Under the pieces are notes generated by a model that was given only the letters and a program-made list of their open reading frames with translations, did no database searches and was not told the DNA's origin. The position numbers and the translations under genes are program-made. A DNA stretch of 64,000 nt, taken from positions 62,001 through 126,000 of the IMG/VR virus record IMGVR_UViG_3300017991_005548; one strand, written 5' to 3'. Below are positions 2,713 through 44,731 of this stretch, piece after piece. Positions within the stretch are counted from its first letter, which is position 1; the number at the start of each line of letters is the position of its first letter.

Positions 2713-2789
2713 TGGTGGCAACGAGAGGAGTCGAACCTCCGACGCTCTGCTCTTCAGGCAGACGCTCTTCCACACTGAGCTACGTTGCC
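2713..2789 (-). tRNA. tRNA-Phe(GAA)
   Basis: Cloverleaf, anticodon arm TCTGC-CTGAAGA-GCAGA, encoded CCA. Confidence 0.95.
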
Positions 2790-2792
2790 ATT

Positions 2793-2868
2793 TGGTGGGA
2801 TGCCTCGGTATCGAACCGAGTTCTCTGGTTTTTCAGACCAGCGCAATGACCTCACCTGCTCACATCCC
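2793..2868 (-). tRNA. tRNA-Phe(GAA), atypical D arm
   Basis: Anticodon arm CTGGT-CTGAAAA-ACCAG, T loop TTCGATA, CCA. Confidence 0.85.
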
Positions 2869-2871
2869 AAT

Positions 2872-2935
2872 AAAAAACCCCGACCAGAAGTCGGGGCCAA
2901 AATACACGAAAAAAACCCCGACGAATGTCGAGGTT
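2872..2935 (-). terminator. two tandem intrinsic terminators of the Phe attenuator
   Basis: AACCTCGAC-ATTC-GTCGGGGTT+U run (2909-2935) and CCCCGAC-TTCTG-GTCGGGG+U6 (2872-2896). Confidence 0.85.
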
Positions 2936-2973
2936 AAAAAGATCTAAACAACACTTTGATCTAACTACCTCGA

Positions 2974-3018
2974 CTAGAGGTGGCTAAAAAATCGAAAGAT
3001 GTTGTTTAAGTTGTTCAT
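2974..3018 (-). CDS. Phe attenuator leader peptide MNNLNNIFRFFSHL
   Basis: 14 codons, three TTT codons, RBS AAGGA, between promoter and terminators upstream of two tRNA-Phe genes. Confidence 0.8.
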   Translation of the reverse strand: MNNLNNIFRFFSHL

Positions 3019-3043
3019 AATGTAAAATCCTTTTGTTGCCCCT

Positions 3044-3071
3044 ATTATAGGGTATCATCCATGCTTTTCAA
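3044..3071 (-). promoter_or_regulatory. sigma70-like promoter of the tRNA-Phe operon
   Basis: TTGAAA-N16-TATAAT. Confidence 0.8.
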
Positions 3072-3086
3072 GTCAGAACTGCAAAA

Positions 3087-7331: not shown

Positions 7332-7409
7332 TGGTCGGGATAGCTGGATTCGAACCAGCGACTCCTTGACCCCCAGTCAAGTGCTCTAACCAGGCTGAGC
7401 TACATCCCG
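7332..7409 (-). tRNA. tRNA-Pro(GGG)
   Basis: Cloverleaf, loop CTGGGGG, CCA. Confidence 0.95.
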
Positions 7410-7451
7410 ACAATTATTCCGACACTTATCCCGACATTTTGTCGGGATTCA

Positions 7452-7574
7452 GAAAAACGCCAGTGTATTGCTCATTTATACTACCTCACAAAGTTTAGAA
7501 TGCTGAATAGAACCTTATTCAAGTTCACTTTTAATAGTACTGTATGGGTGGGATTCGAACCCACATCTCTGGCT
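7452..7574 (-). ncRNA. circularly permuted tRNA-like RNA 1
   Basis: 3' half (GCCAG, AGAT, T arm GTGGG-TTCGAAT-CCCAC, CCATACA; 7540-7574) precedes 5' half (TGTGAGG, D arm, CTGGC; 7452-7490); linker holds the CAGCA element. Confidence 0.7.
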
Positions 7575-7650
7575 TGGTATCCCCAACGGGAATTGAACCC
7601 GTATCTGTTGGTTGAGAACCAACTATCCTAGACCGTTAGACGATGGGGAC
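7575..7650 (-). tRNA. tRNA-Glu(CTC)
   Basis: Loop TTCTCAA, CCA. Confidence 0.95.
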
Positions 7651-7657
7651 ATTAAAA

Positions 7658-7785
7658 ATGAGTCGGAAGGAATCGAACCTTCATTCCCTGGTTGATTTAT
7701 TAAACATCAAATAGTTGCTGGAACGAAACTTATACAGTTTCACTTGGTTTTATGTCCAGGAGTTCTACCATTAAACTACGACCCA
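7658..7785 (-). ncRNA. tRNA-like gene with CAGCAA element inside the anticodon arm
   Basis: Acceptor TGGGTCG/CGACTCA, D and T arms intact, stem CCTGG/CCAGG enclosing ~60 nt; no CCA. Confidence 0.7.
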
Positions 7786-7805
7786 AGTTGTATCTCTAAT
7801 GAGAT

Positions 7806-7882
7806 TGGTCGGGTATGCAGGATTCGAACCTGCGATCTCATCATCCCAAATGATGCGCCTTACCAGACTAGGCTAATACCCG
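7806..7882 (-). tRNA. tRNA-Pro(TGG)
   Basis: Loop TTTGGGA, CCA. Confidence 0.95.
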
Positions 7883-8055
7883 ATACAGAAGTGTTTTATC
7901 CTGTTAAACTATCCCCAACAAGATCGTACTTTAAGTCATCTGACACTAACTCATTTCTGACCCCAGAATATATTTTATTGTTTTGAATGTCAGTTCGTAA
8001 CAACTACTTTACACTCTTAAGCCGAGGCTGGGACTCGAACCCAGATCTCTCCTTT
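7883..8055 (-). ncRNA. circularly permuted tRNA-like RNA 2
   Basis: 3' half (AGGAG, AGAT, CTGGG-TTCGAGT-CCCAG, CCTCGGC; 8020-8055) precedes 5' half (GTTGGGG, D arm, CTTCT; 7883-7919) with ~100-nt linker. Confidence 0.7.
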
Positions 8056-8146
8056 TGGTGACGCAGACGGGATTCGAACCCGCAAAGGAATCTCTTCCTA
8101 CCAGATTGAAAGTCTGGTTACTTCAGGCCAATTTGTATACTGCGCC
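8056..8146 (-). tRNA. tRNA-Glu(TTC) with long variable arm
   Basis: CCAGA-CTTTCAA-TCTGG; V arm AGGAA-GAGA-TTCCT; CCA. Confidence 0.85.
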
Positions 8147-8152
8147 ATTTTT

Positions 8153-8273
8153 TAGTCAGGACGGCTGGATTCGAACCAACTCCTTTAGCTCCTCAAGCTA
8201 AAATAAATATTGCTGTAGCGAACCTTATTGTCAAGTTCATGTTTATAACGTGCTACCATTACACTACGTCCTG
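8153..8273 (-). ncRNA. tRNA-like gene (C1-G72 body, GAG anticodon) with CAGCAA element between D and anticodon arms
   Basis: CAGGACG/CGTCCTG acceptor, 47-nt insert after D arm, TTAGC-TTGAGGA-GCTAA, ends A-CTA. Confidence 0.7.
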
Positions 8274-8318
8274 ATGGTCTGACCCTCAAAAATCATAAGT
8301 CTGATTCTCGAAAAGTCA

Positions 8319-8397
8319 TGGTCTGGATGGTAGGATTCGAACCTACGCTACTCCTCAGTCCAAGTGAGGCGGGATGACCAGACTTCCCCACATCCAG
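8319..8397 (-). tRNA. tRNA-Pro(TGG)
   Basis: CCTCA-CTTGGAC-TGAGG, CCA. Confidence 0.95.
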
Positions 8398-8427
8398 ATT
8401 AAGTCTTCTAAATTTTCAAAGATCATT

Positions 8428-8503
8428 TGGTGACCCCAGTGGGAATCGAACCCAACCTTCCCAGGATGAAAACCTGGTGTCCTAGCCGATAGACGATGGG
8501 GCC
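8428..8503 (-). tRNA. tRNA-Glu(TTC)
   Basis: CCAGG-TTTTCAT-CCTGG, CCA. Confidence 0.95.
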
Positions 8504-8512
8504 ATGGACAAT

Positions 8513-8578
8513 AAAAAAGCCCTCCTAACGCAAGCTAAGAGGGCACAAAAAAAGCCCTCCCGCTCATGGCAGAAGGGC
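8513..8578 (-). terminator. two tandem intrinsic terminators of the Glu/Pro attenuator
   Basis: GCCCT...AGGGC+U7 (8547-8578) and GCCCTC...GAGGGC+U6 (8513-8544). Confidence 0.8.
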
Positions 8579-8600
8579 CAAAATCATAGTTATGATCTAA

Positions 8601-8678
8601 CTACAGATCGGCTGACCTCCTGCCAAAGGCTGGCGGTTCTTCTCGTTCTGGTTCTCGAATGTACATGTAGTTGTTCAT
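8601..8678 (-). CDS. Glu/Pro attenuator leader peptide MNNYMYIREPEREEPPAFGRRSADL
   Basis: 25 codons with GAA x4 and CCA/CCG x3; RBS AAAGGA. Confidence 0.8.
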   Translation of the reverse strand: MNNYMYIREPEREEPPAFGRRSADL

Positions 8679-8703
8679 AACAAATTTTCCTTTCGTTACC
8701 CCC

Positions 8704-8731
8704 ATTATAAACCATCCTAGAGACTTTTCAA
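8704..8731 (-). promoter_or_regulatory. promoter of the Glu/Pro tRNA operon
   Basis: TTGAAA-N16-TATAAT. Confidence 0.8.
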
Positions 8732-8815
8732 GTCGAATTTGAAAATTTTTAGCAAAGTAATAAAAATAAAACGATTATGGCGACTTCCATATATACTGGA
8801 TTACACCAGAAACAA

Positions 8816-10984: not shown

Positions 10985-11348
10985 TTAGCTCATCCAGAGG
11001 AACATTATTTTTTCTAGCTTTTTCTCTGATGTTATGAGCAAACATATTAGCGGACTCAACGAAGTTTTTTAATTCTTCGATATTATTGGATTCCAAAGTG
11101 CCAATCCATGTTGCTATTGGCTGATTGCAGGAACATTTGATTACACAACTTCCATGAACATGATCTACTTCCAATTCAAGGAACTCAAACTCAGTGCAAT
11201 CTTCTAAATGTTGTTTAATATCTTCTTCGAAACTCATGAGAATTGAACTTTTTTCTTTGAAATAATAGACTTTGTGCAAAAATGTATTTATATCGATAAT
11301 CCCTTCTGCACGTAATTTAATAAGACGATCTAATTCTTTAGAGTCCAT
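10923..11348 (-). CDS. hypothetical protein
   Basis: ORF track. Confidence 0.5.
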   Translation of the reverse strand: MDSKELDRLIKLRAEGIIDINTFLHKVYYFKEKSSILMSFEEDIKQHLEDCTEFEFLELEVDHVHGSCVIKCSCNQPIATWIGTLESNNIEELKNFVESANMFAHNIREKARKNNVPLDELIEPLLGFCFEDLNFEAYTDG

Positions 11349-11370
11349 TATAGCTGTTTTGAAAATGTTT

Positions 11371-11712
11371 TCAAGTTTCGTTGCTTCTTACCCATTCAGG
11401 CACTTCGCCTTCTTCCCAACGGATAGCTCTGTCCAAATCTTCTTGAGTGGGCATCAGAATATTGTTTGATATCATATAATTCTGCCAATCTTCCCCAAAC
11501 TGTTCTCGGCATAAAGCTTGACCCCAATCAAACAACTCTCCTGAAATTGAGTAAACGGTATTCCCATGTTTCTCATTCATTCTCTTGACCCATTCAAAAA
11601 CACCTAATACTACTTGTTTTTGCTGTTCTTCGAGACTCATTTGATCTACTGCTTCTTCTACTACCTCATTTGATTCTTGAGTAATGTCCATTTTTTCCTC
11701 AATGGTTTTCAA
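11371..11712 (-). CDS. hypothetical protein
   Basis: ORF track. Confidence 0.6.
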   Translation of the reverse strand: MKTIEEKMDITQESNEVVEEAVDQMSLEEQQKQVVLGVFEWVKRMNEKHGNTVYSISGELFDWGQALCREQFGEDWQNYMISNNILMPTQEDLDRAIRWEEGEVPEWVRSNET

Positions 11713-20073: not shown

Positions 20074-20766
20074 ATGGCTAACAAAATATTTGATGATTAC
20101 CAAGGGCCATCTATTAAAATAAATGGAGTGTGCTACAAGTTTATAGGTGAAACTACAGAACCCTTCGACTCTAACCCAAGTGAAATTGAAGGAGAATTTG
20201 ACTCATGCCTTGCTTGTGCTTTAGAATCTAGTTCTTCAAATTCATCTGAAAGTATAGGTAACTTTTCAACATCAAGTTCAAGTAGCTCAAGCGAAGTGCC
20301 TGTTGTTCTTGGAAATGGAGAAACAGTAGATGTTGATGAAGTCCTTGGTGCAGGACATTATGGAAGGGTTCAAATCACTTATACTGGAGATCCTACTCCA
20401 CCCAACGCCGCTGGTGTTGTGACAGTAAACAATGTCAGCTACAACATAGCCAATGAAGATCCTGATTTTGCTTGGGATTACGACGATGCACAAAATGGTA
20501 GGCATGTGTTCACAGTTATTGGAGAGACTATCCACAGAACGGCTGATGGTAAAGAGTTTTCGGTAACTTGGGATGGTACTGGTAGTATAATCTTTACGGT
20601 AGATGTTGAAGACATTAACAAGTCAAGCAGTAGCTCAAGTTCTTCAAGTTTTGATGATTTTAAAGCGTGGAATGATTTCGCTACTGATGGGCCAAAACCT
20701 AAGACTTGGGCAGACATGAGTAATAGTGGTGACTATCCAAGAACCTGGTCTGAACTACAAAGTTAA
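20074..20766 (+). CDS. repeat-family protein 4
   Basis: Same N-domain, different C-domain. Confidence 0.6.
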   Translation: MANKIFDDYQGPSIKINGVCYKFIGETTEPFDSNPSEIEGEFDSCLACALESSSSNSSESIGNFSTSSSSSSSEVPVVLGNGETVDVDEVLGAGHYGRVQITYTGDPTPPNAAGVVTVNNVSYNIANEDPDFAWDYDDAQNGRHVFTVIGETIHRTADGKEFSVTWDGTGSIIFTVDVEDINKSSSSSSSSSFDDFKAWNDFATDGPKPKTWADMSNSGDYPRTWSELQS

Positions 20767-27451: not shown

Positions 27452-27527
27452 TGGGCTACTCGACGGATCTTGAAACCGCAACCTCCAGGGCCACAACCTA
27501 GCGCTCTGCCTTTGAGCTACGAGTAGC
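27452..27527 (-). tRNA. tRNA-His(GTG)
   Basis: G-1:C73, loop TTGTGGC, CCA. Confidence 0.9.
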
Positions 27528-27538
27528 ATCAAATTGGT

Positions 27539-28210
27539 CTATCCCAACCATTTGTCTCTTTTAAATCCACCTATTTCTTGAATGCCTCCCATAATTTTTT
27601 GTTTTATTTCAACGCTGTGTAATCTTACTGTGCAAATTCCGTATTTTAGTTTACCCTGAAATTCGCTAGATTTAAAATAACATTTTCTCAAATTTTCTTT
27701 CGTCAAACTAAGTGCATTAAGCCAAAATTCAACAATCTCTTGTTCAGAAACTCCATTGTTTGTATAGGCATTTATAGAAAGAGCAAATCTTTTTTCTTCA
27801 AACTCAAAGTGTTCTCTAAGGAACTTCATAAAAAGAATCATCATGTCAATATCGCTATTGCAGAATGTCACTCCTTTATTGGATTCTTTTGTTCCTTCTG
27901 CCCAATAAAGAATACAGCCAACCCGAAAACTTTCAGATATTTTAGCAAGTGCTCTTCCATCAGTTTGCCACTTCCTTCTTTTTCTTCTGAATTTTTCCGA
28001 ATATTTCTCCTGTTTACCAAAATAACCACCTTTTCTTGTTTTTGTCCTGTGCCGCAATTTTAGGTTTTCTATTTGTTCTTTCGTTAGTTGAATATCTCGA
28101 ACCCATAAACTAACAGACGATTGAGACACATCTAGAATCTTGGCTATTTTCTTTATAGATTGTCCACTTTTTCTTAGTTCTCTTGCTTTGTTTCTTTCGA
28201 CTTTTTTCAT
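27539..28210 (-). mobile_element. HTH + LAGLIDADG-like putative homing endonuclease inside tRNA operon
   Basis: N-terminal HTH (GQSIKKIAKILDVSQSSVSLW), LYWAEG, FCNSD; likely start MKK at 28210. Confidence 0.6.
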
Positions 28211-28268
28211 TTTCGAACCCCCATAGTTATATGTGATATAACATATTATACAGCAAGTTCGAACTTTT

Positions 28269-28343
28269 TGGTAGCAGTATCGGGACTTGAACCCGAACGG
28301 CACTCCTTATGAAAGAGTCGCACTACCATTATGCTATACTGCT
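28269..28343 (-). tRNA. tRNA-Met or Ile2 (CAT)
   Basis: ACTCT-TTCATAA-GGAGT, CCA. Confidence 0.85.
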
Positions 28344-28397
28344 ATGAAAGTCTTGGGCTAACCATTGCCCAACCTAGCGTCATTTATCGTATCCAAT

Positions 28398-28472
28398 TGG
28401 CGGTGATAAGGGGAATCGAACCCCTGTCCTCTGGGCGACAACCAGAAATCCTAGCCATTAAACGATATCACC
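28398..28472 (-). tRNA. tRNA-Asp(GTC)
   Basis: Loop TTGTCGC, G73, CCA. Confidence 0.95.
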
Positions 28473-28478
28473 GATAAG

Positions 28479-28552
28479 CGGAACCGAAGGGACTCGAACC
28501 CTCAATCTCCTGATCGACAGTCAGGGGCACTAACCAATTGCGCTACGGCTCC
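28479..28552 (-). tRNA. tRNA-Asp(GTC), no encoded CCA
   Basis: Loop CTGTCGA, G73. Confidence 0.9.
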
Positions 28553-28670
28553 ATAAAACTGAAAGCTCTAAAGTTTTCGTTAGTCTTTTTGCTTTCGCTC
28601 ATACTCCTATACTCTTTATTGTCCAATCCAGTTGTCAATTGGCTCTAAGGAACGATACGAACTTTCAGTT

Positions 28671-28747
28671 TGGTGACGACAGTTGGACTTGAACCAACGC
28701 TCTCCAGTGTGTCGAACTGGCGATTTATCCATCTAATCTATGCCGTC
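28671..28747 (-). tRNA. tRNA-Val(GAC)
   Basis: CCAGT-TCGACAC-ACTGG (C33), CCA. Confidence 0.85.
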
Positions 28748-28751
28748 AATT

Positions 28752-28829
28752 TGGTTCTGCGAGAGGGACTTGAACCCCCGACCTCCTCCTTATCAGGGAG
28801 GCGCTACTTACCATCTGAGCTACCGCAGA
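28752..28829 (-). tRNA. tRNA-Ile(GAT)
   Basis: Loop CTGATAA, CCA. Confidence 0.9.
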
Positions 28830-28834
28830 ATCAT

Positions 28835-28925
28835 TGGTGGGAGTAGCAGGACTTGAACCTGCGTTTACCTTTCGGCCTCCTGTGTATCAGACAGGCGCTC
28901 TAACCAAATACTGAGCTATACTCCC
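28835..28925 (-). tRNA. tRNA-Ile(GAT) with long variable arm
   Basis: Loop CTGATAC; V arm GCC-GAAA-GGT; CCA. Confidence 0.85.
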
Positions 28926-28985
28926 ATAACATTCTTTTTGCATTGTAACATCATCAATGTTATCGTGCAAATTTGATGTTACAAT

Positions 28986-29060
28986 TGGCAGGGACGAAAG
29001 GATTTGAACCCTTACCGCATGGTTTTGGAGACCAGCAGGCTACCATTACAACACGCCCCT
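28986..29060 (-). tRNA. tRNA-Trp(CCA)
   Basis: Loop CTCCAAA, CCA. Confidence 0.95.
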
Positions 29061-29065
29061 GTTAG

Positions 29066-29141
29066 TGGTACTCCTACCAGAACTCGAACCTGGATCTTCG
29101 ACTTCGAAGGCCGTTATTCTAATCCATTGAACTATAGGAGC
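29066..29141 (-). tRNA. tRNA-Arg(TCG)
   Basis: Loop CTTCGAA, CCA. Confidence 0.9.
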
Positions 29142-29175
29142 ATCTACATATAAATTTTCAAAGAACTCTAATTCT

Positions 29176-29252
29176 TGGTACACCCAGCAGGATTTGAACC
29201 TGCAACCTCCTGGTTCGTAGCCAGACGCTCTATCCAATTGAGCTATGAGTGC
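29176..29252 (-). tRNA. tRNA-Arg(ACG)
   Basis: Loop CTACGAA, CCA. Confidence 0.95.
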
Positions 29253-29257
29253 AACTT

Positions 29258-29334
29258 TGGTACTCCTGGCGGGACTCGAACCCACATAGACCTGTTTAGA
29301 AGACAGGTGCCTGATCCAGTTAGACTACAGGAGC
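29258..29334 (-). tRNA. tRNA-Arg(TCT)
   Basis: Loop CTTCTAA, CCA. Confidence 0.95.
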
Positions 29335-29342
29335 ATCTAAAA

Positions 29343-29498
29343 TTATTTCAACTTTTCTTTCGCTTTTTTCAAATCCTCAATTAACTGTTTCTTTGAGTAG
29401 TTTCTGCCTACCCAAACTAATTCATACATTTTCTCGTCTTTTTGATTCTGAACACTGTTCAGAACTCGTTCTAAAATCTCTTGTGCTGTTTCTTTCAT
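29343..29498 (-). CDS. 51-aa hypothetical protein within tRNA operon
   Basis: MKETAQEILERVLNSVQ...LKKAKEKLK, manual translation. Confidence 0.4.
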   Translation of the reverse strand: MKETAQEILERVLNSVQNQKDEKMYELVWVGRNYSKKQLIEDLKKAKEKLK

Positions 29499-29501
29499 TT
29501 T

Positions 29502-29576
29502 TGGCCTCTCCTATAGGACTCGAACCTATATCTGCGGTTTAGGAAACCGATATTCTATCCCTTGAACTAAGGAGAG
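29502..29576 (-). tRNA. tRNA-Arg(CCT)
   Basis: Loop TTCCTAA, CCA. Confidence 0.9.
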
Positions 29577-29584
29577 TCAGGCAC

Positions 29585-29617
29585 AAAAAAAGCCCAAGCT
29601 CCTTAGAGCCTGGGCTT
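29585..29617 (-). terminator. attenuator terminator of the Arg-led tRNA operon
   Basis: AAGCCCAGGCTC-TAAG-GAGCTTGGGCTT + U run. Confidence 0.85.
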
Positions 29618-29635
29618 CGTAAATCTGCTTATCTA

Positions 29636-29716
29636 TCAGAACATGCGATAGCGCAGATCAGAAGCCCTGTGGCTCCAATCGCGTCTAATAATATGCATGT
29701 CTCTAACAACGTTCAT
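29636..29716 (-). CDS. multi-amino-acid attenuator leader peptide MNVVRDMHIIRRDWSHRASDLRYRMF
   Basis: 26 codons; RBS AAGGA; residues 3-14 are only V,R,D,M,H,I,W. Confidence 0.8.
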   Translation of the reverse strand: MNVVRDMHIIRRDWSHRASDLRYRMF

Positions 29717-29813
29717 TTTTCTTAAATCCTTATTCGATTTAGTTTTTCAACTTACCCTCATTAGTCACATTTGATTTGAGTTTTTCTCAGATCTGTACCA
29801 AGAAGTTATTATC

Positions 29814-29841
29814 ATTATAAGCCTTATTCAGAGTATTTCAA
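29814..29841 (-). promoter_or_regulatory. promoter of the Arg-led tRNA operon
   Basis: TTGAAA-N16-TATAAT. Confidence 0.8.
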
Positions 29842-29867
29842 GTCGTCTTTGAAGATTTTCTTGAATT

Positions 29868-32563: not shown

Positions 32564-33997
32564 TTAGACGGTGACCCCTTCTGGGACTACGATTTCATAC
32601 TTCTCGATTGCTCGATCAAGTACTGCCATTGGCGAGAAATCAGTGCCTCCGAGAACTGCGCCTAAGATTGAAGGACTGAAGCCACTTACAAGAGCAACAT
32701 TCTCATGCGTACCTCTTGCAGGACTTCCTGCATATCCAGCAGTATTCCAATATACAATCTTTGGACGACTGTATCCATTTGCTTCCCACTCTTCCATGCA
32801 TCTTTCAATAGTGGTCTTATCGCAGTTACTAGCGCCAGAGCACCAGCCTCCACCATTATCGAACTGCATGTCTGAAATGATCAACAGACAGTTTGGAATC
32901 TGTTCATCAGTTACGTTGAACATCTTTGCAGAGTTCAGGATCTGATCAAGAGCCGCCTTGACGTTCGTTGATCCACAATATCCTTCTCTTCTGCAACGCT
33001 GAATTCCCTGAACAAAAGTCTTTCCCTTCCAATCGACAAGGTGACTGTCGTTTGAGAATGGAATGAACTTCCTGTAGAAAGGGTTATCCTTTCCAACCCT
33101 GTCAGAGCAGTACAATCCCAAACTGGTTGAGATATCAATAGCTCTGATAGAACCAGAGACAGTAACTCCCATAGATCCAGAGAAGTCACAAATTGGCATG
33201 ATTCTCATGTTGCAGTCTTCCATGAAGTTTGGAAGAGCTTCAAACTGAGCATTTGCCAACTTACCATCCTTGTTAGCAGTACGAAGAACGTCATGTGGGA
33301 ACAAAGCACTTGCGTTAACCTTGTTGTCAGAGTCCTCGTCAGTCAAAGACTCTCTCCACTGATCGTATCTTGCAGGATCATGCTTCAAGAATGCGTTAGC
33401 AGATCTTGCCATTGCGACAGAAGGAACAGTGTTGTAGTCAATGTCATGCCAGTCGCCTGAGCACATTGCAGTCTCTACAACATTAGTGTACTCAGCCAAG
33501 TGCTTTCTGAATACCTTTGGAGACATTCCGAGAGCCTTTCTAAGCTTTGCGAAAACAACCTTGTTCTTCTTCTCTCTTGGTGCCCACTTGCAAGCAAGAC
33601 CATGCTTATCAGCAATAGCTCTTGCCCAGTACTGGATTGCAGTATCTTCGCAAGGAGTATCGATACATGCAGTCAAGTCATCCCAACGTCCAGTCTCTGG
33701 AATAAGATGAATATTGACAGTAATCCACTCAGGATGCTTCTCAGCCATCCACTTCAATACAGAACGGAATCCGCTTCTGTTACCTGCTCCACCTCTAGCA
33801 TCACGAAGCCAGAAAGCAAGCTTTGCGGCACGAAGTTGATCGGACTTGAACGCAGGCTTAAACAAGTTCAGAGCACCTGCCTCCGAACCGTAGTAGCTAC
33901 CACGCTTCTCGAAAAGTGATCCTGCCTTGGAGAAGAACTCCAAAAGTGCGTTTCCAGTTGAGTCATACAGAAAGTCGTTGTTGTGTCCTCTTGCCAT
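32564..33997 (-). CDS. TROVE-like/DUF2828 family protein with vWA domain
   Basis: FWLRDARGGAG.R..FR, GRWDDL, KWAPRE, DFSGSM MIDAS, ISDMQFD, IVYWN. Confidence 0.8.
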   Translation of the reverse strand: MARGHNNDFLYDSTGNALLEFFSKAGSLFEKRGSYYGSEAGALNLFKPAFKSDQLRAAKLAFWLRDARGGAGNRSGFRSVLKWMAEKHPEWITVNIHLIPETGRWDDLTACIDTPCEDTAIQYWARAIADKHGLACKWAPREKKNKVVFAKLRKALGMSPKVFRKHLAEYTNVVETAMCSGDWHDIDYNTVPSVAMARSANAFLKHDPARYDQWRESLTDEDSDNKVNASALFPHDVLRTANKDGKLANAQFEALPNFMEDCNMRIMPICDFSGSMGVTVSGSIRAIDISTSLGLYCSDRVGKDNPFYRKFIPFSNDSHLVDWKGKTFVQGIQRCRREGYCGSTNVKAALDQILNSAKMFNVTDEQIPNCLLIISDMQFDNGGGWCSGASNCDKTTIERCMEEWEANGYSRPKIVYWNTAGYAGSPARGTHENVALVSGFSPSILGAVLGGTDFSPMAVLDRAIEKYEIVVPEGVTV

Positions 33998-34028
33998 CGT
34001 ACCATCCTCCTATTGTTGGTTTTGTGTC

Positions 34029-34094
34029 AAAAAAAAGACCAGTCAAACTTGGTTCCGAGTCCCATCTCGCGTATGGAACAAAGTCTAACTGGTC
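34029..34094 (-). terminator. long terminator-like hairpin just upstream of the TROVE-like gene
   Basis: GACCAGTTAGACTT/AAGTTTGACTGGTC + U8. Confidence 0.7.
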
Positions 34095-34111
34095 AAAGTT
34101 AAAAATCGGAA

Positions 34112-34459
34112 CAGGTTAGCAATTTTGGTTTTCATTTCAAGTGAAAGTTTTGGTTGCTGTAACTAACCTTCTATCCTAAATTAAAAATTTGAACAGACTG
34201 ACTTGTTTTTTTTAGCATAAAAAATTTTGAGTTGCTGAATGCAGTCTTATATCAAATTGTTTTTCTAAATTTTCCTTTTTCTTGTTTTCAAAGAAACAAG
34301 TGAAACAGCTTGGGTTTTCCATCCTTTATTTCAGACCTCGATGAATTTGGGTCCTCAAATTTATTTTTAAAACCCTCTCGACTGGGTTCTCGTTTTATTT
34401 CTGTCAGGGCGACTCTGACGCTCGTTTTATCGTGTTTTTTGGTTGCAGTAACCAAGCTT
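34112..34459 (-). ncRNA. structured leader with three CAGCAA elements and anticodon-loop mimics
   Basis: AAG-N8-C(A/T)GCAA at 34154-70, 34232-48, 34443-59, each closed by a helix+CTG; TTTCA-CTTGAAA-TGAAA and T6-ATGCTAA-A6 hairpins. Confidence 0.7.
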
Positions 34460-34477
34460 TATTCAGTTGTTGGTTCC

Positions 34478-34505
34478 ATTATAAGGATTACGAAAAACTT
34501 TTCAA
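34478..34505 (-). promoter_or_regulatory. promoter of TROVE leader
   Basis: TTGAAA-N16-TATAAT. Confidence 0.8.
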
Positions 34506-34534
34506 GTCGGTTTTGAATATTTTTTTTGAATTTT

Positions 34535-39637: not shown

Positions 39638-39729
39638 TGGCGGAAGGAGAGGGATTTGAACCCTCGTGCCCCTTTCAGGACCAACCGCTTTCCAGGCGGT
39701 GACGATTAACCAGACTCCGTCATCCTTCC
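39638..39729 (-). tRNA. tRNA-Ser(GGA)
   Basis: Loop CTGGAAA, long V arm, G73 CCA. Confidence 0.95.
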
Positions 39730-39735
39730 ATATTT

Positions 39736-39993
39736 TTATTTTTCATCTTGGGTTTTCGTTTCCCCTACTTTGATCAGATGTCTTGGGTTAACTAAAACAA
39801 GATAATTTTTAAGTACACAATATCCATTATCCAACATATACTCAATTTCATACATGGTGTTTATACTCATACTCCAAATACCTGCACCATGCCAGTCTTG
39901 ATATTTTTGGGGGCGTTTAACAACATCCCCAATTTTCAAGCCGTTAGGATTGCAAACATCTGCCAGTTCAAGATCCGTTCTTTTCATCTTCAA
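39736..39993 (-). CDS. hypothetical protein
   Basis: ORF track. Confidence 0.5.
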   Translation of the reverse strand: MKMKRTDLELADVCNPNGLKIGDVVKRPQKYQDWHGAGIWSMSINTMYEIEYMLDNGYCVLKNYLVLVNPRHLIKVGETKTQDEK

Positions 39994-40246
39994 GTTCCTT
40001 GTTGATGAAATTCTTTAACACTGCATTGAACCCAATAGAGACAAGTTCTGAAAGCTCGTCCTCTGTTAAATCATGGGTTCTGACCCCCTCAATATTTTCT
40101 GATGCTTTTACAGCAACAACAGGAAGTCCACTCTCTTTTATTAAATCTTTTAGTGCAATAAGTATTAACGTATCGATCTCTCCTTCAGTAAGATCGATCT
40201 TAAATGGTTCGCCTGCTTCAAGTTTTTCTGGTTCAAGAATTTTCAT
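39968..40246 (-). CDS. hypothetical protein
   Basis: ORF track. Confidence 0.5.
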   Translation of the reverse strand: MKILEPEKLEAGEPFKIDLTEGEIDTLILIALKDLIKESGLPVVAVKASENIEGVRTHDLTEDELSELVSIGFNAVLKNFINKELEDEKNGS

Positions 40247-40473
40247 CGTTTAATTACCTTCTCAGGCATTTCATCTCTTTTGTTCACAACCATGTACTTC
40301 CCATTGCCCTCAAAAATAACAGAAAGACCGCCATTTATTAGCTTAGCTGTTTCGCATTTGATCATTTCTGCCCCATCTTTTCTTTTGATCATCTCCCCAA
40401 CATACTCTTCCTGTACTTTTTGATTGATAAAATCTGTTAGATTCATATATCTACCTTTTATTTGGCTCTTCAA
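40243..40473 (-). CDS. hypothetical protein
   Basis: ORF track. Confidence 0.45.
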   Translation of the reverse strand: MKSQIKGRYMNLTDFINQKVQEEYVGEMIKRKDGAEMIKCETAKLINGGLSVIFEGNGKYMVVNKRDEMPEKVIKR

Positions 40474-40678
40474 TCACCATTATACAGCCAAGATTAGTAT
40501 CAAAGTAACTAAGTCCATATTCTTCCAGAACTTCTAGGACCAGTTCCCTCATTTTAAGGGAATTTCCTGTAACAACCTCAAAAGGAGGGTCATAATTAAA
40601 AATATGAGAGTCAAGTAAAGACCGAACATCTTGATGCTTAACCCCATGTAAATCTAACTTCATTTTCCGTGTAACCAA
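40451..40678 (-). CDS. Smr-domain-like small protein
   Basis: LDLHG...VVTGNS motif. Confidence 0.6.
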   Translation of the reverse strand: MVTRKMKLDLHGVKHQDVRSLLDSHIFNYDPPFEVVTGNSLKMRELVLEVLEEYGLSYFDTNLGCIMVIEEPNKR

Positions 40679-41325
40679 CCCTTCCGATTATGAGTCTCTT
40701 TCATTTGAACCTCTTCGGAAGGGACATAAAGACAGTGGTCCTGGATATATCGTTGAACTTCTTCGTCCAAATATGGCAAAAAGTCTGATCTGCCATGTTT
40801 TTTGAAGTGATCTCTTGCCATAGTAGACGAACATTCGGTAATTTTGTCTTCTACGTCCAAGAAAAGATGGGGAGGATTCTTATACCATCGATATTTCTTC
40901 TTCAATTCGATTCCACTTCTTGTTACAACAACAAATTTGGCAATTTCCCGTAATTTTTTGAAATTATGCCAGTTAATGAAGTTGTTTACGTTGTCAGCAC
41001 CAATGATAAAACTGATATCAACATCAAGTTGTGGGTCTTTGAGGAGGGTTTGGACTAATTCGAAGGTCGAACCACTCAGTTCATGTCTAATTTCGTAATC
41101 AAATACATGAAGTTTCGGATTTTTTCTGCAAGCGATAGCGCACATCCTGAGTCTGTGTAAATTAAGCTCTAAATTCTTACCAAATCGATGTTTATTGCAA
41201 GGCAAGAGCCAAACTTCATCAAATTTTCCTTTTTCAAGGACAAATTCAGCTACTTGTATATGAGCAAGTGTTGGGGGATTGAAAGCCCCGCCAAGAATGG
41301 CAATTTTAGTCATAGTTTTCTCCAA
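40660..41325 (-). CDS. nadD: nicotinate/nicotinamide mononucleotide adenylyltransferase
   Basis: GGAFNPPTLAH, FIIGADN...W, CSSTMAR. Confidence 0.9.
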   Translation of the reverse strand: MEKTMTKIAILGGAFNPPTLAHIQVAEFVLEKGKFDEVWLLPCNKHRFGKNLELNLHRLRMCAIACRKNPKLHVFDYEIRHELSGSTFELVQTLLKDPQLDVDISFIIGADNVNNFINWHNFKKLREIAKFVVVTRSGIELKKKYRWYKNPPHLFLDVEDKITECSSTMARDHFKKHGRSDFLPYLDEEVQRYIQDHCLYVPSEEVQMKETHNRKGWLHGK

Positions 41326-41331
41326 TGATTT

Positions 41332-41419
41332 TGGCGGAAGAGGTGGGATTCGAACCCACGGATGCTCTCACATCAACGGTTTTCAAGACCGCCGCCTTCG
41401 ACCTCTCAGCCACTCTTCC
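41332..41419 (-). tRNA. tRNA-Ser(TGA)
   Basis: Loop CTTGAAA, long V arm, CCA. Confidence 0.95.
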
Positions 41420-41428
41420 AAATTTTGA

Positions 41429-41562
41429 TGGACAAGACGGGATTCGAACCCGCAAATCGAGATGCCTCACCCATTGCTTAGGAGAAAAATAACTCCTGCC
41501 CATGGTAGCGACATTACTCTTAAGACCAGAGCCTCAACTTTGCCAATTTAAGTTACTTGCCC
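41429..41562 (-). ncRNA. tRNA-like RNA with branched ~75-nt insert replacing the anticodon loop
   Basis: GGGCAAG/CTTGTCC acceptor, D arm, T arm GCGGG-TTCGAAT-CCCGT; two inserted hairpins; no CCA. Confidence 0.65.
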
Positions 41563-41576
41563 GTCTTGTCAAATTT

Positions 41577-41698
41577 TGGCGGATGAGGTAGGATTCGAAC
41601 CTACACTGTAGCGGTTTCTGTTTTTTGGTTGCTGAAGAGAACCTTTTTGTCAAGTTCATTTTTTGGACCGCCGTCTCTGCCAGTTGGACTACTCATCC
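41577..41698 (-). ncRNA. tRNA-like gene with CAGCAA element in the anticodon loop
   Basis: GGATGAG/CTCATCC-GCCA; stem GCGGT/ACCGC encloses 51 nt. Confidence 0.75.
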
Positions 41699-41709
41699 AT
41701 ATTTATAGT

Positions 41710-41737
41710 AATATAGCCTTAAAATAAGAGATTGCAA
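41710..41737 (-). promoter_or_regulatory. internal promoter
   Basis: TTGCAA-N16-TATATT. Confidence 0.55.
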
Positions 41738-41756
41738 GTTAAATATAAAGAAAAAT

Positions 41757-41843
41757 TGGAGGAAGATTGAGGGTTCGAACCCCATCCCTTTCGGAACCAT
41801 CTGTTTTCGAAACAGTGACAGGAGCCATCCTGCATAATCTTCC
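41757..41843 (-). tRNA. tRNA-Ser(CGA)
   Basis: Loop TTCGAAA, long V arm, CCA (U73). Confidence 0.85.
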
Positions 41844-41851
41844 ATAGAAAT

Positions 41852-41941
41852 TGGCGGAAGGGGAGGGATTCGAACCCTCGGACCCCTTGCGGGGTCGCAG
41901 GTTTAGCAAACCTGTACTTTCGGCCACTCAGTCACCCTTCC
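41852..41941 (-). tRNA. tRNA-Ser(GCT)
   Basis: Loop TTGCTAA, long V arm, CCA. Confidence 0.95.
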
Positions 41942-41951
41942 ATAGGGGGCA

Positions 41952-42689
41952 TTATACCCCAAAAATCAATAATTCAAAATCGCCATTCTCATGTTCTACG
42001 ATTGCAGAGCAATGCTCTACCCAATCTCCGCAGTTATAGTAGTCAATCCCATCAATTTTTTTGATTATAGGAGAATGAACATGACCACATATAACTCCAT
42101 CGCAATGATTCTCTTTGGCATACTCTGAAAGGAGACCTTCAAACTCTCCAACATAAGTAACAGCTTTTTTAAAATTTTCCCTGGCAAACTTTGATAAACG
42201 AACTCTTTTCACTCCGAACATCCTTAAACATCTTGCCAGGAACTCATTCATTGAAACAAGAGTGTCATAACCCCAACTTCCAACCTTTGAGATCATGACT
42301 CCAATTCTTGAAAAAAGAATGAAATCAAACTTATCTCCATGAGTGATGTAATACTTCTTTCCAAAACTGTGATAATATGTTTCTTTACAAATTTCCAGGT
42401 TCGGATAATGAAAACTGTCCAAAAGTTCCATCATACCATGATCATGATTTCCTAAAACATAATGGACGTTACAGTGTTTTGACATTTTTAGAAGTCTTCT
42501 AATGACTTCTGTTTGGTTTTTATCCCATTTAGTTCTGTCTAATCTCCAAAGATCAAAGATATCTCCGATAAGATATAAATTGTCACATTCAGTCTCTTTT
42601 AGGAATTTAAGTAGTTCTTTAGATTTGCATCCAACACTGGCCATGTGGCAGTCTGAGATGAATACTGCTCGGTACTTAGTTTTACTCAT
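41952..42689 (-). CDS. LpxH-like calcineurin-type metallophosphoesterase
   Basis: FISDCH, GDIFD, GNHD, THGD, GHVH, NCGDW; likely start MSKTK at 42689. Confidence 0.85.
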   Translation of the reverse strand: MSKTKYRAVFISDCHMASVGCKSKELLKFLKETECDNLYLIGDIFDLWRLDRTKWDKNQTEVIRRLLKMSKHCNVHYVLGNHDHGMMELLDSFHYPNLEICKETYYHSFGKKYYITHGDKFDFILFSRIGVMISKVGSWGYDTLVSMNEFLARCLRMFGVKRVRLSKFARENFKKAVTYVGEFEGLLSEYAKENHCDGVICGHVHSPIIKKIDGIDYYNCGDWVEHCSAIVEHENGDFELLIFGV

Positions 42690-42777
42690 ATTTTTCCTCC
42701 TATAAGTAGTAAGGAATAATACTGAGAAAACAGGATAAAACCTACTCAATAATGAGTTGTTAACCAAGTATTAATAT

Positions 42778-42868
42778 TGGCAGAGGGAGTGGGACTCGAA
42801 CCCACAAACCGCATTTCTACAGCTTACATGATTTCAAATCAAGCTCTTCATCCAGCCAGATTCCCTCC
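42778..42868 (-). tRNA. tRNA-Ser(TGA), divergent
   Basis: CTTGA-TTTGAAA-TCATG, long V arm, G73 CCA. Confidence 0.75.
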
Positions 42869-42874
42869 ATTGAT

Positions 42875-42960
42875 TGGTAGCTAGGAGGGGGGTCGAACCC
42901 CTACGCCTTTCGGCATTAGTTTCTAAGACTAACATGTCTACCAAGTTCCATCACCTAGCC
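42875..42960 (-). tRNA. tRNA-Leu(TAG)
   Basis: Loop CTTAGAA, long V arm, CCA. Confidence 0.95.
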
Positions 42961-42965
42961 ATCTT

Positions 42966-43042
42966 TGGTAGCCTCGCTGGGAGTCGAACCCAGAACATAC
43001 AGTTTCTAAGACTGCCCTCTCTGCCAATTGGAGTACGAGACC
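42966..43042 (-). tRNA. tRNA-Leu(TAG), short variable arm
   Basis: Loop CTTAGAA, 5-nt V region, CCA. Confidence 0.85.
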
Positions 43043-43050
43043 ATTAAATT

Positions 43051-43136
43051 TGGCGGAAGGTAGGAGATTCGAACTCCTATGCCCGTGAGGACGACAGTTT
43101 AGCAAACTGCTGGCTTACCATTCGCCACAACCTTCC
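43051..43136 (-). tRNA. tRNA-Ser(GCT)
   Basis: Loop TTGCTAA, CCA. Confidence 0.9.
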
Positions 43137-43138
43137 AT

Positions 43139-43225
43139 TGGTAGCCAGGGAGGGCCTCGAACCCTTACTCCCTTTCGGGAACTGGATTTTGAATCCAGCG
43201 CGTCTGCCAATTTCACCACCTGGCC
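43139..43225 (-). tRNA. tRNA-Leu(CAA)
   Basis: Loop TTCAAAA, long V arm, CCA. Confidence 0.95.
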
Positions 43226-43236
43226 AATAAATTTAA

Positions 43237-43304
43237 TGGAGCTAATGAGATTCGAACTCATCCCCCTGCCTCTATGGGCAGTTCGGCTACCGTCTAGTAA
43301 CCCC
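43237..43304 (-). ncRNA. degenerate tRNA-like RNA with G3:U70 acceptor
   Basis: GGGGTTA/TAGCTCC-A, T arm ATGAG-TTCGAAT-CTCAT, 6-nt loop CATAGA, poor D arm. Confidence 0.5.
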
Positions 43305-43336
43305 AATTGGTTGCGTATAAACATATAAACAATATT

Positions 43337-43424
43337 TGGTAGTCTCGGGGAGATTCGAACTCCCACCTCCTTCGCGGAGACAACGACCTCAACGTTGCGT
43401 GTCTGCCAGTTCCACCACGAGACC
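43337..43424 (-). tRNA. tRNA-Leu(GAG)
   Basis: Loop TTGAGGT, long V arm, CCA. Confidence 0.95.
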
Positions 43425-43494
43425 ATTATAAGTGGCCATAACTGACGAATTAACCCCAGTTTTGGCCGTTTATTCGTAATATATTACGAATTAT

Positions 43495-43570
43495 TGGTAG
43501 CCCTGGTCGGATTCGAACCGACACTTTACGGATTTTAAGTCCGCTCCCTCTGCCGTTGGAGTACAGGGCC
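43495..43570 (-). tRNA. tRNA-Leu(TAA), short variable arm
   Basis: Loop CTTAAAA, CCA. Confidence 0.85.
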
Positions 43571-43645
43571 ATTTTTAACTGTTTTTCTCGTTATAGTGGA
43601 AAATATAACTGTTTTTCCAGTTTTGTAACTGTTTTTCCAGTAAAA

Positions 43646-43737
43646 TGGTGAGCAGGGAGGGATTCGAACCCCCAATGTTTACCCAAAGGGGACAGATTTA
43701 CAGTCTGCCGCAACACCACCATCGTTGCCGCCTACCC
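43646..43737 (-). tRNA. tRNA-Tyr(GTA)
   Basis: Loop CTGTAAA, long V arm, CCA. Confidence 0.9.
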
Positions 43738-43741
43738 ATTT

Positions 43742-43829
43742 TGGTCCTGGTGGTAGGTAACGATCCTACTTGATGCGCAATGATGATAGTTTTACAGACT
43801 ACCCCGTCTCCTTAACGGTCTACACCAGG
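43742..43829 (-). tRNA. tRNA-Tyr(GTA), atypical T loop
   Basis: Loop CTGTAAA; T loop ATCGTTA; CCA. Confidence 0.75.
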
Positions 43830-43940
43830 ATAAAAAGGTGACTTAAGTCACCTAATGCCTCTGGGTCAGACTTACCAATACCGTCATATTGGGTCCGATA
43901 GCCCAGTAAGGACTTTAAGCGTCTGGTTTTCCCCAGACCC

Positions 43941-44028
43941 TGGAGCGCGGTGAGGGATTCGAACCCTCGCGGACATAAGTCCCATCAGTTTTGCAGACTG
44001 TGCCATTAAACCACTCTGGCAACCGCGC
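43941..44028 (-). tRNA. tRNA-Cys(GCA) with long variable arm
   Basis: Loop CTGCAAA; V arm GGAC-TTAT-GTCC; U73 CCA. Confidence 0.85.
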
Positions 44029-44034
44029 ATATTA

Positions 44035-44105
44035 AGCACGATGTCGGAATCGAACCGACTTCTGCGGGTTTGCAATCCGCCGCCTCACCATCTGGCTCAT
44101 CGTGC
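44035..44105 (-). tRNA. tRNA-Cys(GCA), no encoded CCA
   Basis: Loop TTGCAAA, U73. Confidence 0.9.
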
Positions 44106-44141: not shown

Positions 44142-44213
44142 AATATTCCCGTTCGGTAACATTCGAAACACTCTGAAGTTCAAAACCTTAGAATATTACC
44201 GCTCGGTAACATT
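44142..44213. repeat. pair of 22-bp palindromes 50 bp apart
   Basis: AATATT(C/A)CCG(TT/CT)CGGTAACATT at ~44142-44163 and ~44192-44213. Confidence 0.65.
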
Positions 44214-44233: not shown

Positions 44234-44266
44234 AAAAAAACCCCGTTCGGAAAACCGAACGGGGTT
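44234..44266 (-). terminator. attenuator terminator of the Cys/Tyr/Leu/Ser tRNA operon
   Basis: AACCCCGTTCGG-TTTT-CCGAACGGGGTT + U run. Confidence 0.9.
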
Positions 44267-44284
44267 GAAAACCGAGTTAAGAAC

Positions 44285-44362
44285 TTACGTTCTCTGGACG
44301 CACAACCCCGTCCATCTCAAACTGAGATATGATGAACATAGGCTGAGCGATAAAGATTTCAT
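44285..44362 (-). CDS. Ser/Leu/Cys/Tyr attenuator leader peptide MKSLSLSLCSSYLSLRWTGLCVQRT
   Basis: 25 codons; residues 3-15 are only S,L,C,Y; RBS AGGA. Confidence 0.8.
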   Translation of the reverse strand: MKSLSLSLCSSYLSLRWTGLCVQRT

Positions 44363-44401
44363 TATAAGTTCTTTCCTGTTAAAAATTCAAATTACAACCC
44401 T

Positions 44402-44429
44402 ATTATAAACTGGATCTGAAGCTTTTCAA
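44402..44429 (-). promoter_or_regulatory. promoter of the Cys/Tyr/Leu/Ser tRNA operon
   Basis: TTGAAA-N16-TATAAT. Confidence 0.8.
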
Positions 44430-44731
44430 GTTGAAAACGCAATTATTTCAAATTTTTCTTTTTCTTTCAGCCATTCGTACTCATGAAGGTAAGGGTTATC
44501 GTAGAAAATAATTGGATACTTTCCACCACCAGTACATATTGGGACAACATTATAGGATAGCCATTCAGTCGCCTCTTCAAAATCCATCCCTTCTCCCATG
44601 AACTTCTGCAACATAAGTTCATAAGAATAAATAAGTTCATCTCTTATGGTGATGCCAACAACACAATTGTCCAAATCATCTAGTTTAATGGTCCCATCAT
44701 CACATTCTTCCAATATTTTTTGAATATCCAT
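44426..44731 (-). CDS. hypothetical phage protein
   Basis: ORF track. Confidence 0.55.
   Translation of the reverse strand: MDIQKILEECDDGTIKLDDLDNCVVGITIRDELIYSYELMLQKFMGEGMDFEEATEWLSYNVVPICTGGGKYPIIFYDNPYLHEYEWLKEKEKFEIIAFST

Follow-up and report, generated by a model that had tools for sequence, protein, structure and literature searches.

Leader ORFs with candidate codon-sensing attenuators precede the tRNA clusters of a huge phage

Why phages carry tRNA genes, and how they deploy them, has been debated for decades, with codon compensation, replacement of degraded host tRNAs and escape from tRNA-cleaving defences all proposed (PMC10264068, PMC11464382). In ribosome-mediated (leader-peptide) transcription attenuation, the position of a ribosome on a short leader ORF decides between a terminator and a competing antiterminator. 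The multivalent leaders of enterobacterial amino-acid operons are the closest described systems, and thrL (Thr and Ile) and ilvL of ilvGMEDA (Ile, Val and Leu) appear to carry runs of codons for several amino acids in this arrangement. The leu operon leader, which probably carries four rare CUA codons, suggests that codon choice, and not only amino-acid identity, can set sensitivity. Attenuators also control aminoacyl-tRNA synthetase genes, as for the His leader before hisS (PMC2965389) and probably the pheM leader of pheST, so that a component of the translation apparatus is regulated by stalling at its cognate codons. T-box riboswitches likewise link the state of a tRNA to read-through by terminator-antiterminator competition, but bind uncharged tRNA directly and have no ORF.

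Here we describe leaders of this general design in front of tRNA clusters in a huge phage genome of ~525 kb, from analysis of a 64,000-nucleotide stretch of that genome (hereafter, the window). In contrast to thrL and ilvL, the genes downstream are tRNAs rather than biosynthetic enzymes, up to seven amino acids and about ten codon types are packed into one run, and the element belongs to a phage. Whereas the output of the pheST and hisS attenuators is a synthetase that recharges tRNA, here it is the tRNA itself, so that the product would directly relieve the stall. The leu leader appears to repeat one codon, whereas these leaders spread their codons across isoacceptor classes. At the gathering threshold of Rfam only tRNAs matched, with no match to curated leader families (Leu, Thr, His and Trp leaders, and others) or to the T-box model; hits below threshold were driven by the terminator hairpin, the best being PyrR at 28.9 bits against a gathering score of 54. 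We know of no leader-peptide attenuator whose regulated genes are tRNAs, and no description of one, in phages or in cells, was found in the open-access papers and preprints searched, although this is not proof of absence.

The Ser/Leu/Cys/Tyr leader and its sister loci

The original prediction, of an attenuator whose leader reads Ser, Leu, Cys and Tyr codons mirroring the downstream tRNAs, is confirmed at the sequence level, and all of its parts lie on the minus strand:

44402..44430 (-), sigma-70-type promoter, cTTGAAA-N16-TATAAT (11 of 12 matches)
44371..44377 (-), SD-like AGGAAAG, 11 nt before the ATG
44285..44362 (-), leader ORF of 25 codons plus a stop
44318..44356 (-), regulatory run, codons 3-15, S L S L S L C S S Y L S L
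44328..44349 (-), region 1, the part of the run that pairs with region 2 in the minimum-energy fold of the free leader
44303..44314 (-), region 2, the antiterminator arm TGGACGGGGTTG (codons 17-20), complementary to the 5' arm of the terminator
44239..44266 (-), regions 3 and 4, intrinsic terminator hairpin (12 bp, TTTT loop), followed by a T tail reaching 44234
44142..44213 (-), spacer between the terminator and the first tRNA, with two 22-nt near-palindromic repeats (44213..44192 and 44163..44142)
39638..44105 (-), array of 14 tRNA genes for Cys, Tyr, Leu and Ser, with interspersed ORFs (including a metallophosphoesterase, 42767..41952) and two tRNA-like genes with insertions

The ORF begins M K, continues with the run (codons TCT TTA TCG CTC AGC CTA TGT TCA TCA TAT CTC AGT TTG; 5 different Ser codons and 4 different Leu codons) and ends R W T G L C V Q R T and a stop. 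A run of 13 of 13 residues from the set {S, L, C, Y} has P = 2e-9 against the amino-acid usage of this genome. The downstream tRNAs are those originally listed, namely Cys-GCA x2, Tyr-GTA x2, Leu-TAA/GAG/CAA/TAG(x2) and Ser-GCT(x2)/CGA/TGA/GGA, and all 10 of these anticodon species are sampled by the run. GACGGGGTTG (44312..44303) is complementary to CAACCCCGTT (44267..44258), which forms the 5' side of the 12-bp, 8-GC terminator hairpin (-22.7 kcal/mol, z = -5.1). Region 2 and the terminator's 5' arm form 12 contiguous pairs including G-U (shuffle P = 0.003), and a transcript ending before the 3' arm folds into the antiterminator. The full leader folds with the run paired to the antiterminator arm, plus the terminator (MFE -57.2 kcal/mol, z = -6.3), although the role of the pairing between regions 1 and 2 is inferred. 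A second promoter-like site (44390..44361), whose -10 element overlaps the ATG, is not conserved in the other leaders and was taken as chance. The spacer repeats (AATGTTACCGAGCGGTAATATT and a variant with 2 mismatches) together fold into a long hairpin (z = -4) and are absent from relatives; they could be a processing site, a protein-binding site or a remnant of an insertion.

This locus is not an isolated case. The promoter is one of six near-identical copies in the window, against 0.05 expected, always on the minus strand, and four of these precede the four tRNA clusters of the window. Each of the four is followed by a short ORF and one or two terminators just before the first tRNA. The three sister loci are:

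29590..29842 (-), promoter 29842..29814, leader ORF 29716..29636 (M N V V R D M H I I R R D W S H R ...) and terminator 29617..29590, preceding tRNAs Arg x4, Trp, Ile x2, Val, Asp x2, Met and His (29576..27452)
8519..8732 (-), promoter 8732..8704, leader ORF 8678..8601 (core E P E R E E P P) and tandem terminators 8579..8553 and 8544..8519, preceding tRNAs Glu x3 and Pro x3 (8503..7332)
2877..3072 (-), promoter 3072..3044, leader ORF 3018..2974 (core F R F F) and tandem terminators 2935..2914 and 2897..2877, preceding tRNA-Phe x2 (2868..2713)

A promoter-pattern scan of IMG/VR recovered two more clusters of the same genome outside the window, whose leaders served as an out-of-sample test. The leader before Val-TAC, Ala-TGC, Ala-GGC and Ile-TAT contains I A I A V V A V A V V A, and that before Thr x3 and Lys x3 contains T T K T T K T T K T T K K. 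The cluster or clusters for Gly, Asn and Gln, if they exist, were not found. The best segments match in 3/4 residues (Phe), 7/8 (Glu/Pro; P = 7e-7), 14/15 (Arg/Trp/Ile/Val/Asp/Met/His; P = 6e-7), 13/13 (Ser/Leu/Cys/Tyr), 12/12 (Val/Ala/Ile) and 13/13 (Thr/Lys), with P from 4e-4 (Phe) to 2e-12 (Thr/Lys). Four of the six leaders score highest against the amino-acid set of their own cluster, whereas in the Phe and Glu/Pro leaders the own set only ties with that of another cluster. An AAGGA/GGAG-type motif lies 9-12 nt upstream of the ATG in all six leaders. In the Phe and Glu/Pro leaders, the 3' arm of the first terminator is complementary to the 5' arm of the second, an arrangement that could relay an antitermination decision through both and is conserved in the relatives L023 and L026 (L numbers denote retrieved loci). 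The Thr/Lys leader is itself preceded by another short ORF (M N N A H K L Q L N E D K E F; L010 3843-3890, minus strand), which begins ATG AAC AAT, similar to the start of the other leaders, and may reflect a two-ORF leader or a relic.

Equilibrium folding with a masked ribosome footprint always favours the terminator, so a switch would have to be kinetic, as in the trp operon. We therefore used a co-transcriptional model, asking whether the terminator's 5' arm is already paired upstream at the moment it has just been made, with a ribosome footprint masked at each codon in turn. In all six leaders the arm is mostly paired while the A site is on the run and becomes free once the ribosome moves beyond it. 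The modelled state without a ribosome is intermediate (0.45) in the focal leader.

Conservation and covariation in metagenomic relatives

No cultured phage is close. Megablast and blastn of the locus against deposited phages gave no match, tblastn with the ClpB-like protein and a helicase gave identities of at most about 44%, and blastn of a whole tRNA cluster gave only generic tRNA hits. DnaJ and metallophosphoesterase anchors in IMG/VR returned only the same phage or distant loci without tRNAs. In contrast, a DHH phosphoesterase lying between two of the clusters has many metagenomic homologues, whose contigs keep the gene order and carry conserved Glu/Pro and Phe leaders. A 199-aa protein lies just upstream of the focal leader, and an alignment of its homologues, used to scan JGI metagenomes, returned 71 loci. 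The same alignment found nothing in bacterial and archaeal genomes, giving no clue to the host.

All 32 loci with a Cys-first tRNA cluster have a Ser/Leu/Cys/Tyr-rich ORF of 25-32 codons upstream, comprising 28 distinct peptides in which composition is conserved but residue order is not (neighbouring protein 30-59% identical in these relatives); an SD-like motif is present in 20 of 28. In all 24 leaders with a strict terminator, the longest complement of the terminator's 5' arm starts between 2 codons before and 2 codons after the end of the run, with a median length of 9.5 bp and shuffle P below 0.05 in 17 of 24. Compensatory changes occur in all three strands; for example, the relative L091 has AGTGGGCT / AGCCCACT / GGTGGGCT where most others have AACGGGCT / AGCCCGTT / AACGGGCT. 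On a 15-sequence alignment, the terminator is 97.5% paired, with 7 pairs changed on both sides and 0 of 500 shuffles reaching the observed covariation score, and the antiterminator is 82% paired, with 6 pairs changed on both sides and 5 of 500 shuffles reaching the observed score. The modelled switch appears in 20 of 23 relatives, although in several the model predicts the antiterminator also when no ribosome is present or when one sits at the stop codon, and the no-ribosome state is intermediate in relatives (0.66 on average), so the basal state is uncertain. In about nine loci (L052, L054, L055, L058, L073, L074, L078, L097) one or more protein-coding genes lie between the terminator and tRNA-Cys; the first encodes about 130 aa with a conserved N-terminus of the form M K I R x G F x S N S S S x S F and is therefore under the same attenuator.

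The original prediction also held that codon diversity points to isoacceptor-level rather than amino-acid sensing alone. For the focal leader this diversity is not significant on its own, with P of about 0.10 for covering all eight Ser/Leu anticodon classes and about 0.09 for using at least 9 distinct codons. It becomes significant only across the 28 homologous leaders, which cover a mean of 7.54 of 8 classes against 5.61 expected, with 16 leaders covering all eight. TCC is used 26 times against 5 for TCT and CTC 25 times against 9 for CTT, compared with a background fraction of 0.20 for the C-ending codon in both cases (P = 6e-14 and 2e-11), whereas AGY, TGY and TAY follow the background. These leaders are related by descent, so the P values overstate independence. 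C-ending codons in four-codon boxes may be read only by the G34 isoacceptor, by inference from cmo5U34 tRNAs in enterobacteria, and would then poll it exclusively. Ile and Val tRNAs are split between two clusters, and the leaders use ATT/GTT before Ile-GAT/Val-GAC and ATA/GTA before Ile-TAT/Val-TAC. The relative L102 lacks Val-GAC and also the GTT GTT doublet, and has exactly one codon for each of its three Arg isoacceptors. In the relative L023 (13537-13697), the Phe cluster begins with a tRNA called Ser-AGA by ARAGORN, and that relative's Phe leader alone has a TCT codon within the run (F S R F F S), a single case that may show a leader tracking tRNA content. Matching is nevertheless imperfect: Arg-TCG, Glu-CTC and Pro-GGG are unsampled in their own leaders, two GTC codons sit in the Val-TAC leader, some clusters with no detected Tyr tRNA keep Tyr codons, and across loci tRNA gene presence does not predict codon use (permutation P = 0.2). 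A CGA codon also sits inside the Phe run (window 2990-3000), where 'CGA TTT TTT AGC' is conserved at the nucleotide level in four diverged phages (including L022, L023 and L026), and two CGA codons flank and interrupt the Glu/Pro run (window 8640-8660). CGA, the codon of Arg-TCG, the one Arg isoacceptor not sampled in the Arg leader, may be a deliberately slow codon or a structural constraint.

A local version of the matching test found no leaders matched to tRNAs in a T5-like phage or in Stenotrophomonas phage CM1 (best P about 1e-3 to 1e-4), whose tRNA clusters, interspersed with small ORFs, are also not sorted by amino acid. It found three in an unrelated 635-kb uncultured huge phage record, LR745206 (LR745206.1 368284-408398, reverse complement, starting at 20699, 1696 and 761 on the minus strand of this segment). 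One has 23 of 24 run residues from the amino-acid set of the 19 tRNAs downstream, one precedes Pro and Asp tRNAs, and one is Gln-rich and precedes three Gln tRNAs; two of the three show the same placement of region 2. These leaders sit behind a different conserved promoter-like motif (GGTAGA..GAAACTT..TATCTATATTTGTA), so the design is not tied to one promoter type.

Proposed feedback on tRNA supply and alternative readings

We interpret these elements, with high confidence but on computational evidence alone, as ribosome-mediated attenuators that gate phage tRNA operons. In the proposed mechanism, transcription starts at the strong promoter and a ribosome begins to translate the 25-codon leader. 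If every Ser, Leu, Cys and Tyr codon in the run is decoded promptly, the ribosome moves onto codons 16-25 and covers region 2 while RNA polymerase makes the terminator, and transcription stops before tRNA-Cys. If any one codon waits for its aminoacyl-tRNA, the ribosome stalls upstream, region 2 stays free and pairs with the terminator's 5' arm as soon as it is made, and polymerase reads into the 14 tRNA genes. In this scheme the run samples a codon for each downstream anticodon species and therefore behaves as an OR gate over about ten tRNA species, and because the output is those same tRNAs, the loop is a negative feedback on decoding capacity. Translation of the ORF, kinetic operation of the switch in a host whose coupling of transcription and translation is unknown, and tRNA shortage (a poorly matched host pool, host tRNA decay or anticodon-nuclease defence) rather than amino-acid starvation as the signal are inferred.

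An attenuator of the same kind could instead sense only amino-acid supply, with incidental codon diversity. The non-significant diversity of the focal leader, the lack of a cross-locus association and the unsampled isoacceptors favour this view, but we consider it unlikely given the even class coverage and C-ending preference across the 28 leaders and the cluster-specific Ile and Val codons; moreover, making more tRNA is a poor answer to amino-acid starvation. Isoacceptor-level sampling is thus supported by comparative codon statistics but remains an inference. Inverted logic, in which stalling favours termination, or a leader that mainly sets transcript timing or processing, draws some support from the ambiguous no-ribosome state and the extra structured spacer of the focal phage. 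This is very unlikely, because the arm competing with the terminator lies just downstream of the run, where a ribosome held on the run leaves it free and one that has passed the run masks it. Short ORFs and terminators are common and no Rfam family matches, but a chance ORF with an ordinary operon-end terminator, or a leader peptide or RNA acting in trans instead, is contradicted by the comparative data: whole-peptide P values for the six leaders multiply to about 1e-23, composition rather than sequence is conserved in 28 relatives, the terminator lies between a promoter and the tRNA genes, and the antiterminator pairing covaries. A trans role is not excluded as an additional function.

More tentatively, and with somewhat less than even likelihood, huge phages may run their tRNA arrays as closed-loop homeostats that resolve single isoacceptors, each amino-acid-sorted operon being gated by a leader that polls one codon per encoded tRNA species, so that loss of any one species switches on its replacement, in at least two phage lineages with different promoter types. 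A demand-sensing switch in front of each tRNA operon would show that the phage measures decoding capacity codon by codon and supplies tRNAs only when needed, and would explain why these genomes sort their tRNA genes by amino acid. It would extend leader-peptide attenuation to RNA genes whose product directly relieves the stall, and to viruses, and would offer natural, compact, multi-input sensors of isoacceptor availability that are easy to find by computation.

Other features were also noted in the window and in relatives. Rfam calls three extra tRNA-like genes of 119-134 nt (7658-7785, 41429-41562 and 41580-41698, minus strand) that ARAGORN misses by default; with the intron option, ARAGORN places 42-57-nt insertions at the anticodon loop, and they could be intron-containing or interrupted tRNAs inside the attenuator-controlled arrays. 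One insertion carries the TCAGCAACCAAAAA motif also seen near 34150-34450. The sixth promoter copy (34506..34478, within 33997-34506, minus strand) drives about 450 nt with no convincing ORF, repeated ...CAGCAACCAAAA-like motifs and a terminator-like end, just upstream of a DUF2828/DUF7788 gene (33997..32564; PHROG name 'RNA-binding protein'), and may be a structured non-coding RNA partner of that protein. Another copy (11347-11375, minus strand) has a -10 element overlapping an ATG (TATAATGG) that opens a longer ORF, possibly a leaderless mRNA. In relatives (L022-L030, L102-L103), the syntenic neighbourhood is rich in genes for translation and RNA repair, including an IF3 homologue, RtcB, a Thg1-like protein, PhoH fused to a PIN domain, NADAR and ADP-ribosylglycohydrolase, and a 90-aa protein with the Phe-tRNA-synthetase N-terminal domain lies right after tRNA-Phe.
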